Shown here: one piece after another, positions 44,701-51,400 of the stretch
How positions within the stretch are numbered: the first letter of the stretch is position 1
Layout of the letters: each line of letters opens with the position of its first letter
Origin: Bugula neritina
Taxonomy: Eukaryota; Animalia; Bryozoa
Assembly: GCA_964035545.1 (NCBI GenBank)
Contig: OZ037767.1
Span: 23,576,628 to 23,640,627, forward strand
DNA: 64,000 nucleotides
Direction of reading: 5' to 3'
Made by a program: the position numbers and the translations under genes
The notes under the pieces: generated by a model
The model's input: the letters and a program-made list of their open reading frames with translations, nothing else
The model's database searches: none
Told to the model about the DNA's origin: nothing

Positions 44701-47194
44701 TGTAGAATACAGTATAAAGTATGTTTTGGGAGACTGATTTTTTTATTTAGTAAGATTTTTTATATAAAAATTACTCAGTATATGGATGCTGAAATGACAC
44801 ACTATATGGATTGATATCAACTTATTACATTTAGCATAATGTTATGTTGAAAGTGCTAGAACATGAAATGTGTACAAATGATTTGATTCTTGTATATTTA
44901 CAGACCACAGAAACTGTTCTTTAAGATGCCAAATCAAACTAAAGAAGGCAAAGTTCAGTTAATAATAAAACTATCAGAAAATGTCACAGCAAAGTACGAC
45001 TTTGTATATAGAAAGGATCCTATTTTGAACCATCCTGTTCAGCCTGCCACCATTGCTGGGTAGGTAAACAAACATTTATTTACATAATGATGACTTAAGC
45101 CAGGGCCACATAGACCGACATTTCTTGTACAAAACCCTATGATGTAAAACCCCAGTGCAAGAGATTCTTGTCATTCACAATATGTTTCTATTAATAGGAT
45201 CAAAACTCAAGTAGACAAATGTATTATTCAATGGTTTTAATGCTTTTTATTAGGAAATTGCACGTACTTCTCTCAGTAATGTGCAGCTGCTTGACTTTTC
45301 TATAGACTAGTTTGCTTCAACATATCAACGATAAAATATTCTGCTCATGGGTTAGTTCACTCATTACCAGTTATTTTAAAGCATACTGTGAACATGAAGC
45401 AGTTTGAGTCTTTAAAGCTTGTTGGAGTATACGCCCCCCCCCCCGCGCTTGTCATAACTCATTTGTTACTCTTTCAGTGGAAGAATAGACGCTGAGTTTG
45501 ACATTCTGAATGTTGAGTCATCAAATAAATATACTCTGTTTACTCCAACACTTGGAGAGACCTTTGTGAGTTAGAGGATTAATATTTACCATGTAGAAGT
45601 AACCATAAAAAACTGTTTAACCTCTTATACTGGTATACCTTAGTTATCATGTATAATATGACTTTTCCTTGTTAGGAATTCATCAGATATAAATTATAGC
45701 TTATAAACAATTTCAAATTTCAACATATTCTTATATGTAATTATTACAATAATGTAATATAAGTATTTGCCACTAAACTACAGTAGAGGGTATAGAAATG
45801 GTATTGTTTATCTGACAGGCATGTTCCCATGATGGTAGGACATTGAGGTGTGCTATAACCCAAATTATAACAGGTATCACAGCATGTTTTACTTGTTAGA
45901 CTTTTTCATAACATTTATATAACTATGACTCTGCTAGCAGGACACTAAGTTAATTATATAGGGTCTGTCCAATTTCACAACTGGTATTTATACCTCTTAG
46001 AAAAACACTTACCCGGGTTAATAGTTCTATTGTTTGGTGATGTACTACAATTCAAACCCCTTTATGATAATTGCAACCATGCAAAGCTCTCCAAAATTTA
46101 ATTTTAGCACCATACATGTTCATTTTGCTTTTTGATACGTGCATTAAGGTTTTTCAATAAAGGTTCCATTGGTATGAAACCAATATATGCTTGATTCAAG
46201 GTTCACCGAATTACTTGTTTAAATGAGTTTTCATTAATATTATGCTTATGATGTTTTAGCAAAACAAGAGAATTTAACAAACCCGTGGTATCTACCTGTT
46301 CAGCTGTTAAGTGATGGAATTCCTGTGAAAAACTCTGAGAATTTGAACCTGACCATCTACAGTGATCCAGTGATAGAAGTAAGCACGAGTAGGGCTGGCA
46401 ATGTACCCCACCCTAAATTAGTAAATATGGGTGTGGAACAGTACACTGACTATAGCTCTACAGTTTATCATAACAACAATATAATGAAATATTAGCTTCA
46501 TTGTTTGCTATATACTAATGAGATGTCCGTCATGATACGGAATATATAAATACATAAAGAAACCAAACATTCTGAATATGAAGTTTACAATCCATCAGAA
46601 GTAGTTTTTTATCATGTAGTGACTAGACAATCAAAATATGCTCTAGATATTACTAAATTTAAAACTGCTCTCAAAGATAATAATTGCTGATTATGTAACA
46701 AGGTGCTAGTTAATATAGCAAAGTTAGTGTTGCTGATAATTAAAATCTACACTAAGTAGCAAACTGTTAATTGGGGAGATATTGACTTTATTTCGAAACA
46801 TTTTTCAAATTGTTTATTATATTTGCACCTATATCAATTAAGAAAGGAATCAAAGCTAAAATTTTGTCTAAAATCTTCTGTTTATGGGGGAGTTCTTTGT
46901 TATAAATATTTTGTCATCAATTAAATAGCAAATAGGAAAGTTTTTTTTATAATAAGCAATTAAGTCCGGCCATTGACTAAGTTATTAAAAGCAGGATTCA
47001 TTTGTGTAGATTCTAAAAACATTTTTCTTCTGTTGCACTGCATTAACTGGGTTATATATTATTAATGTCATATTTTAATTAGTGAGAATTTATTTGTGAT
47101 TGCATTTTAGTAAAAAACTTCTCTCATTATTCATTTTCTTTACTTTTAGGCTAAACCCACAAATCACAGGCTGCTGACAGTATCTGAGCCATAA
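41722..47194 (+). CDS. Gene C: predicted secreted ectodomain-only paralog (SP, 1 NHL-like propeller, CCP, IPT), 10 coding exons, 681 aa, no TM or kinase
   Basis: Exons 41722-41786, 42646-43643, 43903-44079, 44245-44429, 44561-44718, 44904-45059, 45478-45565, 45819-45873, 46260-46378, 47150-47194; total 2046 nt with an open frame. Signal peptide [21 protein letters not shown]. Last exon AKPTNHRLLTVSEP* follows ttttctttacttttag; AATAAA at 47457. Confidence 0.82.
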
Positions 47195-47967
47195 AAGTAT
47201 TTGGCTGCTATTCACAACTTAGTTGTATAGCTTACTATGACTATTTACTGTCTGTTCTGAGTAAACAAGTGTTTCTCCATGTTGATATACAATCTGATAA
47301 CCTACCATTTATTTCACTGTGTATGTTCATTTGTTTGTAAGAGAGTTGTCCACTTTTTCATCTTTTTTTATGTAAAATTATGGTACTCATGATGCATTTC
47401 TTAATGTCCTTTCTATGTCATTTTTTAAATATATGCATTTTACAGTAAATATTTCTAATAAAGCTTCATCACACACACACACGCACACACACACACACAC
47501 CGTACAGACACCGTACACACACCGTGCACACATTGTACACACACCTTACACACACCTTACACCCACCATACATACAGTGAAGTTAAACATTACATAATGC
47601 AAGTTTTGTTTGCTATGACTAAATAAAGGTGCCTTTATTTTGACTGCATATGTCAAAATGATTATAACTTAAATGAATGCTTTGTTTTAATTAAAATAAA
47701 TACCAAACAAATATTGAGGTCAGATATTGCAATTCTTTAAAACTTTGAAGAAATGTTATTAACACATACAAGAGTAACTATGAAAACGAAAATATCATTA
47801 GACTAACGGTTATTAGAATTAGCTTCTGTATAAGTACTGATAGTATGAAGATAATTAATTAAAGAAGAAGGATAGTGTCACGAAAAACCAAAACTCATCA
47901 AATTTTTAAAAGGTGAAAGTTCAAGTTCTAAATTGCTCCTCTAAACATTAGTAATCAGTGACATAAC

Positions 47968-48491: not shown

Positions 48492-51400
48492 TTATGGCTC
48501 AGATACTGTCGACAGCGTGTTATTTGTGAGTCCAGCCTAAAAGTAAAGAAAATGAACAATGAGTTGGTAAAACGTTTTTCCAAAATGTTGTATGAGGCAA
48601 AAAAGGCACTAAAATCTAAACATTTAAATAATGTTGGATCGCATCCTTTCACTAACGTTGTAAAACATTTGTAAATGCAAATACAACGGGCCGTATTTTG
48701 CATTTTTTGCTCTCATTCGTCTGTTTTTCAAGTTACTAATTCAATAATCTCTAGTGTTAATGCTGCATCTGCTGTCTATTACAGGTACCAGTTTGTTGTT
48801 TCTATCTCTCTCACAACTTTCAGAATAATAAAATTTTCATGACGAAAAAATTGGCCCATTGTGCCCCGGTACCGGGGTACAATGGGCCACTGGGTGGGAC
48901 ACAACAAATAAATTGAAATTTTGTGTATTTTGTTACATCTGATCTTTATTTATTTAATATTACAAATAAATAAAAATACTCTTTCAGATCTACAGCAAAA
49001 TTCATGTTTTAGCTCTACAGTTTGTGCCACTACCGATAGCAGAGGAAGGCAAAATCAAACGCACGTCACTCGGTTTTGCAGTGCCATTATTGTTACTGTG
49101 TATAACTAAAAATATTGTGTTATTTTCACCTCAGAGAAACGTTTATCAAAAAAAAATTTTGTAACATGTACTACAAAATTTCGAGTGAACTTTTTTCTAT
49201 GAACTACAGCTAAGGTGCATGGCTAAGGTTTGTGACTGGAGTACGGAAGGGAGAGGGGGAGCAAATGAGCAAATCACAATCTATTTTAGTCAAATGCATG
49301 TATATTCCCTCAATGGTGTAATATGTAATGATTATTATGACTATCTACTAGTAGCAAGTAGCAACAGCAGAGTGTTTTGTATTATGTATAAAATAGCAAA
49401 GCTCTAACCTCACCAGATGTATATATTAGGGGAGCTTCTACTTGTAGTTTTGTAGTCTTACCATGATGTCTTTGATATTTTACAAAAAGGTCAGAAATGG
49501 CTATATCTATATATTTTAGTAACATTTCAACCAAATTTTTGGACAAACAAACTAATAACAGTGATCAGGGTGCAATAATCAGGTGGCCCATTGTGCCCCG
49601 GTCAGCGTGGCCCATTGTGCCCCGTGTGGCCAAATTGAAAATAAATGTGTCTCAAGGAAATATTATTTCAGAGTTTGCTGTTATACTAGTTAGGCAATGT
49701 AGAGGCAAGCAATGGCAACAATATTAGTCAAATATAGGCTTCTTGCCTTTGAGTGTAAAAATTTATAAAGCTTTAACGACATCCTAAAAAATTTACAAAA
49801 AGTAGGTAAAAACAGTTTTTTACTCGCCTTTTCAACCCGTATGTTCCGCAAGTGTTGAAACTACAAAGGTTGAATAATTATGTCAATATCTTTTTATGAA
49901 AAAAATTCACAACTCTAAGTCAATAAGTTCTCTCACAATTTGGCCAGCTTTTTGTACCCCTATGACCGTTGTGCCCCCCCCCCCGTTACCCCTACTGTTG
50001 GCAATAGACAAAAAGTAGAGTTGTGGCCTGTTTCTGTGTCCTCCATCCATTCACCTTTCATTAAATGAATAAATGAATCACAATACATAGGCATCTGTGC
50101 CAAACAGCACTCTGCTGCCACACTGTGTTTTTATATAATAAGAAAGTGGTTAAACTTAATGAACCAGTACATGTTTAATCCTACAAATTATTACAACTGA
50201 GGATTACACAGACAAGTCACAGCAAACCAAGCTATTAGAATGGCGATACCTACTAAATTCCACAAATCAGAAATATCTCTGTAAATAAAAATCCTGCAGT
50301 ATAGCAGTAAAAATATCTTTAAAAAGCTGTTAAAAAGCAATTGTTTTTAATAACTGAACTATAACTGCAACACTTGGTCATTCCAAAAAGCTCTTTTGTT
50401 TTTATTTAATTTCAATCTTTAAGCCCCTTATTATAAACTGTTATATTATAATGACTTTAATTTTACTTGGTAATTAGTTGATGCAAGAATATGTAAAATA
50501 AACATTTTCTTTCATAAAAGCAGATTCTGGACATACATGGTTGCCTGTTTGATTCATTAGGTAATTAGGTCTGGCATTTTGTTTAAAGTAGGTGCAATAA
50601 TATAAAAATTGCAATATGTTACAAGTAAAGGCGACGTACCTTTAACCAATTTATTAAGCTGGGTTTATACCTTCATGATTTTCAGTTAAAAATTTAATTT
50701 GGTCAAGTTGAAATTTCACTTTGCAGTGCAATGTAAAAGCCACAAGCTGAAATTTTTAAACTGTAATAATTTAATCAGCCGAGCTCAGAATAATAATCAA
50801 AAAGGAGTGGTAACTCTATATAAATATTGGTATTAAATTATTACTTTTGTGACTAAACGAAGTCTTTATATATGTTTATAATTACATCGGCTACGCTTTC
50901 TCAATTATCAATTTCATGCTGTCAACATTATTAATTTACGATGGACATCAAATGGTGATTAGCCGAATCCTATCTCACGACTAAGTAAGCTTCTGCATCA
51001 ATATGAGTTTACCAGCTTTAGTAAGACTATAAAGGAGTACTCAAACAAGTGTTAATAACTTTTTAAGCAAAGATATAAGCACAACTGTACCTGGTGCAGA
51101 GTTTCATTATCAACCTCCATTAACTTTTCTAATTAGTTAACACCTTGCTACATAATCGGCACTTACTATCTATAGGAGCATGTTTCAATCTAGCAAAATT
51201 TAGAGCCATTAAACAGTTGTCTGGTCATCTACTCACTCTGTGATATATTATGTTATAGTTCTGTTCAAAATGTATGTTTTCAATATTAATTTATGTTTTG
51301 TATATAAGACGGACAACCTGTTATCATAATATAGGTATAGCCAATGTACTGTTCCACTCTCATGTCTATCAATAGGGTGGGGTACATTGCCACCCCTACT

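Follow-up and report, generated by a model that had tools for sequence, protein, structure and literature searches.

Two putatively secreted relatives of a MET-type receptor gene in Bugula neritina, with a predicted terminal exon of intronic origin

Several soluble receptors are encoded by stand-alone genes, among them IL22RA2 (IL-22BP), TNFRSF11B (osteoprotegerin), TNFRSF6B (DcR3) and the sFRPs. In the receptor gene MET, the transmembrane (TM) segment is encoded by exon 13. A soluble isoform of human MET, 'short MET', is described as arising by intronic polyadenylation in intron 12 of the gene, and its soluble ectodomain is reported to antagonise HGF-MET signalling (10.1101/2023.08.09.552237, citing Tiran 2008 for the antagonism). 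Soluble decoy receptor tyrosine kinases (RTKs) produced through the activation of intronic poly(A) sites have also been reported (Vorlova et al. 2011, as cited in PMC3826338 and 10.1101/2023.08.09.552237), and in C. elegans the truncated receptor DAF-2B is described as sequestering ligand (PMC7041946). Here we analyse a 64,000-nt stretch of DNA from the bryozoan Bugula neritina (hereafter the window), which spans positions 23,576,628-23,640,627 of the chromosome-scale contig C3. It contains two convergent genes, C and D, each of which ends in a 45-nt coding exon with a stop codon, referred to below as the stop exon. We consider it likely that C and D arose as unprocessed 5'-partial duplicates from a MET-type RTK gene resembling their full-length neighbour B, that their end exon was recruited from an intron, and that their product is soluble.

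Comparison with the known systems brings out both likenesses and differences. As in short MET, the predicted terminal exon of C and D comes from the equivalent pre-TM intron, with loss of the TM and kinase parts from a MET-type receptor. Short MET is, however, an alternative isoform of a single gene, whereas C and D are separate duplicates for which this would be the sole possible 3' end. In the two genes the TM and kinase exons are physically gone, as are one propeller and one IPT domain; antagonism, reported for short MET, would be putative in C and D. Like the decoy RTKs and DAF-2B, they would encode truncated ectodomains that do not signal and are closed by an intronic terminal exon; the former are isoforms under splicing and polyadenylation control, whereas in C and D the outcome is fixed by the gene structure itself and a decoy role is putative. 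With IL22RA2, TNFRSF11B, TNFRSF6B and the sFRPs they share the status of separate paralogs of a membrane receptor that keep only the secreted, ligand-binding part. Those genes belong to other families and taxa, and C and D differ from them in that the path from partial duplication to exonised intron can still be read in the DNA. Relative to their own paralogs A, B, E, F and G, which combine a MET-like kinase and a putative IPT stalk with a Sushi domain and two NHL-like propellers, C and D stand apart by ending in the recruited intronic exon.

The gene models of C and D were rebuilt exon by exon through alignment to each other and to the full-length paralog B (Table 1). The spliced models served for the frame checks and for the estimation of nonsynonymous and synonymous rates (dN and dS), and family and fold searches were carried out with single exons. 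All internal boundaries of both models carry AG/GT, and each model comes to 2046 nt, that is 681 codons and a stop, with no internal stop codon. The two proteins have 535 identical residues over 683 alignment columns. Exon 9, which encodes ..IYSDPVIE, ends in phase 0 in both genes. In C the stop exon starts with G and is preceded on the plus strand by the acceptor ttcattttctttacttttag; the same acceptor is found in D on the minus strand, and in both genes a shared sequence of ~270 nt lies between the stop exon and an AATAAA. The donor of the B counterpart of exon 9 joins to the exon for the third IPT-like domain (IPT3). Neither this exon nor the TM and kinase exons of B were found by tblastn downstream of C or D on either strand. 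These observations agree with what a first-pass annotation of this DNA had proposed: the acceptor, the phase-0 exon of 14 codons, the stop and the AATAAA can be read directly on the genes' own strands, the rebuild again gives two spliced open reading frames (ORFs) of 681 aa free of stops and frameshifts, and the tblastn searches with the B exons bear out the lack of third-IPT, TM and kinase exons.

A six-frame genome search with the C propeller exon placed the family in a cluster on C3, at 23.58-23.71 Mb, which comprises the five two-propeller genes A, B, E, F and G, the single-propeller genes C and D, and a fragment riddled with stop codons immediately beyond the end of the window. C and D are 66-90% identical to B, introns included, and have in common with it the putative signal peptide, propeller 2, the linker, Sushi and the putative IPT1 and IPT2. 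Propeller 1 is missing from both; ~16 codons from the start of the B propeller-1 exon run on in frame into the interior of the propeller-2 exon. The predicted domain order is a signal peptide, one NHL-like propeller, a linker, Sushi, two split IPT-like domains and the 14-codon tail. For the propeller (exon 2) an AlphaFold model was obtained with pLDDT 80 and pTM 0.79; it is of the NHL type with six blades, it matches the NHL six-blade structures of SOQ1 (7djj) and NHLRC2 (6g7w) as well as teneurin at a TM-score of ~0.6, and the exon carries NHL features in the protein atlas with a score of 0.94. When single exons were searched against Pfam, only exon 4 (Sushi) and the kinase exons of B (PF07714) matched; the propeller and half-IPT exons had no match, the propeller exons in particular none to Sema or PSI, and the B IPT3 exon gave a weak DUF7498 match only. 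Among solved structures the B kinase exons match the MET kinase best, with E values of 7e-11 to 9e-14. B thus carries a kinase of the MET/RON type, and the N-terminal Sema seven-blade propeller and PSI of that type were not found in it. By tblastn, the IPT3, TM and kinase exons of B were found only in A, in B itself and in a further gene at 63631-61519 on the minus strand. A protein library search with exon 2 returned only 46 fragments, all of them short ORFs of exon size, and no full-length relative with an annotation; a look-up of clusters yielded no names, and a literature search on this domain architecture returned nothing relevant.

The N-termini of C and D are hydrophobic and are encoded by a separate first exon common to B; they are signal-peptide-like by hydropathy. 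The KD19 hydropathy of the two proteins peaks at 1.7, at the N-terminus, as against 3.1 for the TM exon of B. Outside the N-terminus the maximum is at or below 1.45, and no TM-grade segment is present. The last 19 residues are hydrophilic, with KD19 values of -0.5 (C) and -0.1 (D), and do not form a hydrophobic C-terminus of the glycosylphosphatidylinositol (GPI) type. Taken together, the lack of a TM-like segment, the hydrophilic C-termini and the signal-peptide-like N-termini make it most likely that the product is secreted and has no membrane anchor, whichever 3' end is used. Such proteins could act on the same ligand/receptor system as the full-length kinases, as a trap, a co-receptor or an opsonin-like binder.

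The block made up of the acceptor, the stop exon and the following sequence is present in exactly three copies in the 216-Mb genome, namely in C, in D and in an orphan copy, O, all of them in the window and within 9 kb. O sits between the 5' ends of B and C, and no family exons were found upstream of it on its own strand. An nhmmer profile built from the three copies matches B (22550-22477, minus strand), F, G and E; the E values of the four matches are 1.9e-5, 3.9e-5 (B), 6.6e-4 and 0.05. Every match has the orientation of its gene and follows that gene's IPT3 exon at a distance of a few hundred bases. The block aligns convincingly with the introns of B, E, F and G in the exon as well as in the acceptor and the flanking sequence. 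The AG is absent from the homologous site in G (AA) and in B, where it has mutated to AT, so that the segment is not an exon in B.

In sensitive blastn the tails of C, D and O align collinearly with B over 24300-21627. B 24300-23991 is the counterpart of exon 9 together with the first part of the intron after it, C 46589-46625 matches B 23791-23755, and C 46672-46949 matches B 23061-22762. The intervening ~0.7 kb of B (23755-23061), which contains IPT3, is deleted from the tails, at position 46625-46672 in C. Homology to B stops ~370 nt before its TM exon (21260). This collinearity up to the pre-TM intron implies that C and D descend from a partial duplicate that would have been broken there. 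Judged by nhmmer, the alignment and blastn, the stop exon is a recruited piece of the parental IPT3-to-TM intron, and in this respect the first-pass annotation, which had taken it for a dedicated exon, needs to be corrected. The same annotation had held that a high-copy repeat unlinked to the family would speak against it; what was found is three copies, all inside the cluster. It is very improbable that the block is a mobile, repeat-derived or non-coding element, for instance a hairpin inverted repeat, which came to stand after C and D by chance. Such an element would account for three copies with one orphan, for arms (47123-47358 and 48328-48563) that are 91% complementary across a spacer of 969 nt, and for the microsatellite after each copy. 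However, only three copies exist in 216 Mb and all are in the cluster, the block is collinear with the parent intron and has more parent-intron sequence on both sides, and the inverted repeat is simply part of the inverted duplication of the whole gene.

One other candidate for the source of the stop exon was rejected, namely a truncated IPT3 exon. LLTVSEP and SLTVGKP looked alike, but in MAFFT and Smith-Waterman alignments the IPT3 exons of B, E, F and G did not match the stop exon better than shuffled sequences did (best p ~0.04-0.05 before multiple testing), and the idea was dropped because nhmmer had located the actual homologue in the intron that follows IPT3. As regards O, a (TA)n tract of ~480 nt (38696-39172) abuts its start at the point where homology to the C intron ends, and may lie at the breakpoint where a third truncated copy lost its body.

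The protein library search also pointed to a 14,984-bp contig from a JGI metagenome (L010/L012) which is ~88% identical to the window, introns included, and carries the same convergent D-C pair with both stop blocks. It is taken as the orthologous locus of a sibling Bugula species, and its genes are called C' and D'. C' is complete: its ten exons match those of C in length, indels and internal stops are absent, and it ends in AGLTNHTLPTVSEP followed by a stop codon. C-D rates were calculated by NG86, and lineage changes were polarised by parsimony to the terminal branches. Between C and D, dS is 0.334 and dN 0.117 (ω, or dN/dS, 0.35), and the values against B are similar. Between C and C', dS is 0.203 and dN 0.051 (ω 0.25, Fisher p=6e-16), and there is no indel in 1981 nt of exon as against ~30 events in the introns, for which the divergence K is 0.09-0.18. 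Exon indels are solely in frame, whereas the introns hold many indels. The polarised synonymous/nonsynonymous changes number 30/22 in C, 33/27 in C', 32/26 in D and 32/32 in D', where neutrality would lead one to expect ~106-117 nonsynonymous changes per lineage, and ~106-112 for C and D (p<1e-6 for all four, p<1e-7 for C and D); the lineage ω is ~0.2-0.3 across the four genes and ~0.2 for C and D. Neither lesions nor a dN/dS of ~1, by which an unprocessed pseudogene would be recognised, is seen in C or D, lesions being confined to D'. The substitution pattern shows C to be, on this evidence, under purifying selection in both genomes, and D in the present genome. With their ORFs intact at these values of ω, the two genes are not simply the broken duplicates that the first-pass annotation had argued against. 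Its further description of them as maintained stands for C in two genomes and for D here, and fails for D in the sibling genome, where D' is disabled.

A number of observations weigh against our reading of C and D and have to be set beside these results. D' is disabled by TAC>TAA at codon 54, by 1-nt deletions in exons 2 and 6, which cause two frameshifts, and by a 60-nt deletion that takes the exon 9 acceptor and the 5' end of that exon. That C' has no lesions on the same contig argues against assembly error; D' was lost recently, and D is thus dispensable in a close relative. The first nine codons of the tail change fast, with 5.7 nonsynonymous as against 0.3 synonymous changes between C and C', and the acceptor, the ORF, the stop and the AATAAA are preserved equally well in O and in the disabled D'. 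Within the repeat-laden last intron of D, several other AG sites score as high as the proposed acceptor. The only sequencing run with the locus is DNA-like, and its contigs, which cross the intron (46419-47242), support the assembly only. Finally, the IPT label of exons 5-9, which were searched singly, is putative.

The loss of D' bears on the possibility that C, D or both are decaying unprocessed pseudogenes whose frames are open through youth or through repair by gene conversion. Gene conversion is indeed active in the cluster, as seen in a B-like tract in C and in a 10-nt deletion common to the C' and D' tails. Even so, we hold this explanation to be quite improbable. With dS of 0.33 (C-D) and 0.20 (C-C') there has been ample time for decay, yet C, C' and D are free of lesions while their introns gather indels, and ω is ~0.2 per terminal lineage (p<1e-7). 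In addition, the single-propeller fusion and the loss of IPT3 have no donor among the full-length genes, and therefore conversion fails to explain the in-frame junctions at these two places.

That the 45-nt exon is the one actually spliced is something we infer from indirect support: the donor of exon 9 is retained, the phase fits, and the acceptor is the best available in C. All of C, C', D, D' and B retain the GTAAG donor, and the acceptor is identical in the first four. In C it has a position weight matrix (PWM) score of 8.7, the highest of any AG between the donor and the (CA)n, the others scoring 5.5 or less. The last intron of D contains a very high-copy repeat with a contig depth of 1e4-1e5, compared with ~50 for unique sequence; the D' intron is without this insert, which is therefore a recent insertion. 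C and D could also be real genes for secreted proteins whose 3' end is not the 45-nt exon, the intron being read through or another acceptor being used. Read-through of C does give a further 39 codons in frame (ORF 46325-46495), the D intron has AG sites that score equally, and the conservation of the block is uninformative on this point. We nevertheless regard another 3' end as unlikely, in view of the retained donor, of the clear lead of the C acceptor, of the last 18 nt and stop being invariant in C, C', D and D', and of the read-through tails of C and D, which part by a frameshift after ~13 residues.

The conservation of the stop block does not prove its use, because O and D' retain it and because gene conversion has taken place. 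The divergence of the 3' untranslated region (UTR), K 0.127, falls within the intron range. In the block the distance between the paralogs C and D (11%) is about that between the orthologs C and C' (10%), and the C' and D' tails share the 10-nt deletion, which is missing in C, D and O; both features point to gene conversion between the tails. The 'conserved ~270-nt 3' UTR' of the first-pass annotation is accordingly better explained by recent duplication together with gene conversion. O has one synonymous change in the last 18 nt (TVSEP and stop), and their invariance in the four genes is suggestive at best as a sign of selection on the stop exon. A separate tract of gene conversion was noticed in exon 2, at 43400-43460, where C is B-like and C', D and D' read GEVYSGPD...

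The following sequence of events would account for the structure that we favour, namely a partial duplicate closed by a piece of intron. The duplication would have ended inside the intron before the TM exon. Before C and D separated, their common ancestor would have undergone an in-frame deletion that joined the beginning of the propeller-1 exon to an internal part of the propeller-2 exon, and a second deletion of ~0.7 kb would have taken out the IPT3 exon. The exon 9 donor would then have been left in need of an acceptor, and the remaining intron could have supplied a strong polypyrimidine-AG, a stop 14 codons on and an AATAAA ~265 nt further; the corresponding introns of B, E, F and G still contain a recognisable version of this segment. 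An inverted copy of the unit would then have given the convergent C/D pair, and a tail-only copy, O, would have remained upstream of C.

In E and F the homologous site has an AG acceptor (PWM 7.2 and 7.8, compared with 8.7 in C and D). A stop follows in frame, 42 and 3 codons on, respectively, and there is an AATAAA ~135 nt further; the site could be an alternative last exon yielding a soluble isoform with three IPT domains. It is conceivable, though rather doubtful, that the 45-nt exon descends from an ancestral alternative last exon that gave a soluble isoform of the full-length receptor, as human MET intron 12 does. Retention of the AG, the in-frame stop and the AATAAA by E and F would speak for it, with B and G having lost the AG. 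If this were true, an isoform would have turned into a gene: the soluble function would have moved to stand-alone genes after the partial duplication, and some full-length copies would then have let the alternative exon decay.

With recruitment from the intron as the preferred origin, C and D offer a readable example of how a soluble receptor gene may be assembled, through partial duplication, two domain-sized deletions and the co-option of an acceptor, a stop and a poly(A) signal that lay in an intron. C has been kept by selection in two sibling species, and D was kept in one and lost in the other. For bryozoans, it would mean that a lineage-specific MET-like cluster, in which NHL propellers replace Sema, may carry built-in secreted modulators. 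No long-standing question is opened by these genes, since soluble receptor paralogs and decoys made by intronic polyadenylation are already well known.

Table 1. Positions of the exons, introns and related segments of genes C and D, of the orphan copy O and of the homologous sites in B, E and F (window positions, except for E and F, which are on contigs L005 and L007)
Feature	Position	Strand	Remarks
Gene C, coding span	41722..47194	+	10 exons, 681 codons
Gene C, exons 1-5	41722-41786, 42646-43643, 43903-44079, 44245-44429, 44561-44718	+	
Gene C, exons 6-10	44904-45059, 45478-45565, 45819-45873, 46260-46378, 47150-47194	+	
C exon 9	46260..46378	+	donor GTAAGC; 89% identical to B 24259-24141
C last intron	46379..47149	+	collinear with both B introns around IPT3
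C terminal coding exon (proposed)	47150..47194	+	AKPTNHRLLTVSEP and stop; GCT AAA ... CCA TAA; same boundaries in ortholog C'
C putative 3' UTR	47195..47480	+	AATAAA 47457-47462, then (CA)n
Gene D, coding span	48492..56254	-	10 exons, 681 codons, architecture as C
Gene D, exons 1-5	56254-56193, 55297-54294, 54055-53879, 53723-53539, 53407-53250	-	
Gene D, exons 6-10	53064-52909, 52312-52225, 51978-51927, 51528-51410, 48536-48492	-	
D last intron	48537..51409	-	2873 nt; high-copy repeat ~48680-50213
D terminal coding exon (proposed)	48492..48536	-	14 codons, 45 nt, phase 0
D putative 3' UTR	48190..48491	-	AATAAA 48210-48205
Segment X	47570..47968	-	downstream of D tail; homologous to B 22111-21703, further on in IPT3-to-TM intron (segment X with both copies: B 22139-21627)
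Segment X, second copy	39902-40400	+	after orphan O
Orphan copy O	39171..39764	+	230 nt of intron, acceptor, VRPTNHTLPTVSEP and stop at 39399-39443, UTR-like part, AATAAA, (CA)n
B IPT3 exon	23264..23476	-	absent from C and D; IPT/TIG by protein-atlas features, 0.95
Homologue of stop exon and acceptor, B IPT3-to-TM intron	22476..22552	-	nhmmer, alignment, blastn
Stop-exon homologue, E IPT3-to-TM intron	L005 ~2134-2290	+	
Stop-exon homologue, F IPT3-to-TM intron	L007 ~560-700	-	

Some further features of the cluster were noted. The kinase exons at 61519-63631 lie upstream of D on the same strand and are 50-77% identical to those of B; the only propeller match beyond them is at C3:23640738-23641112 and contains 4 stop codons, and this member may be rearranged or decaying. 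B has ~5.2 kb of extra sequence (24730-29996, minus strand) in the intron between the homologues of C exons 7 and 8, an intron of 253 nt in C. The convergent tails of C and D form an inverted repeat of 236 nt, whose spacer is made of (CA)n, (GGGGA)n and (GA)n, and a read-through transcript of either gene could fold through these tails as a long hairpin.

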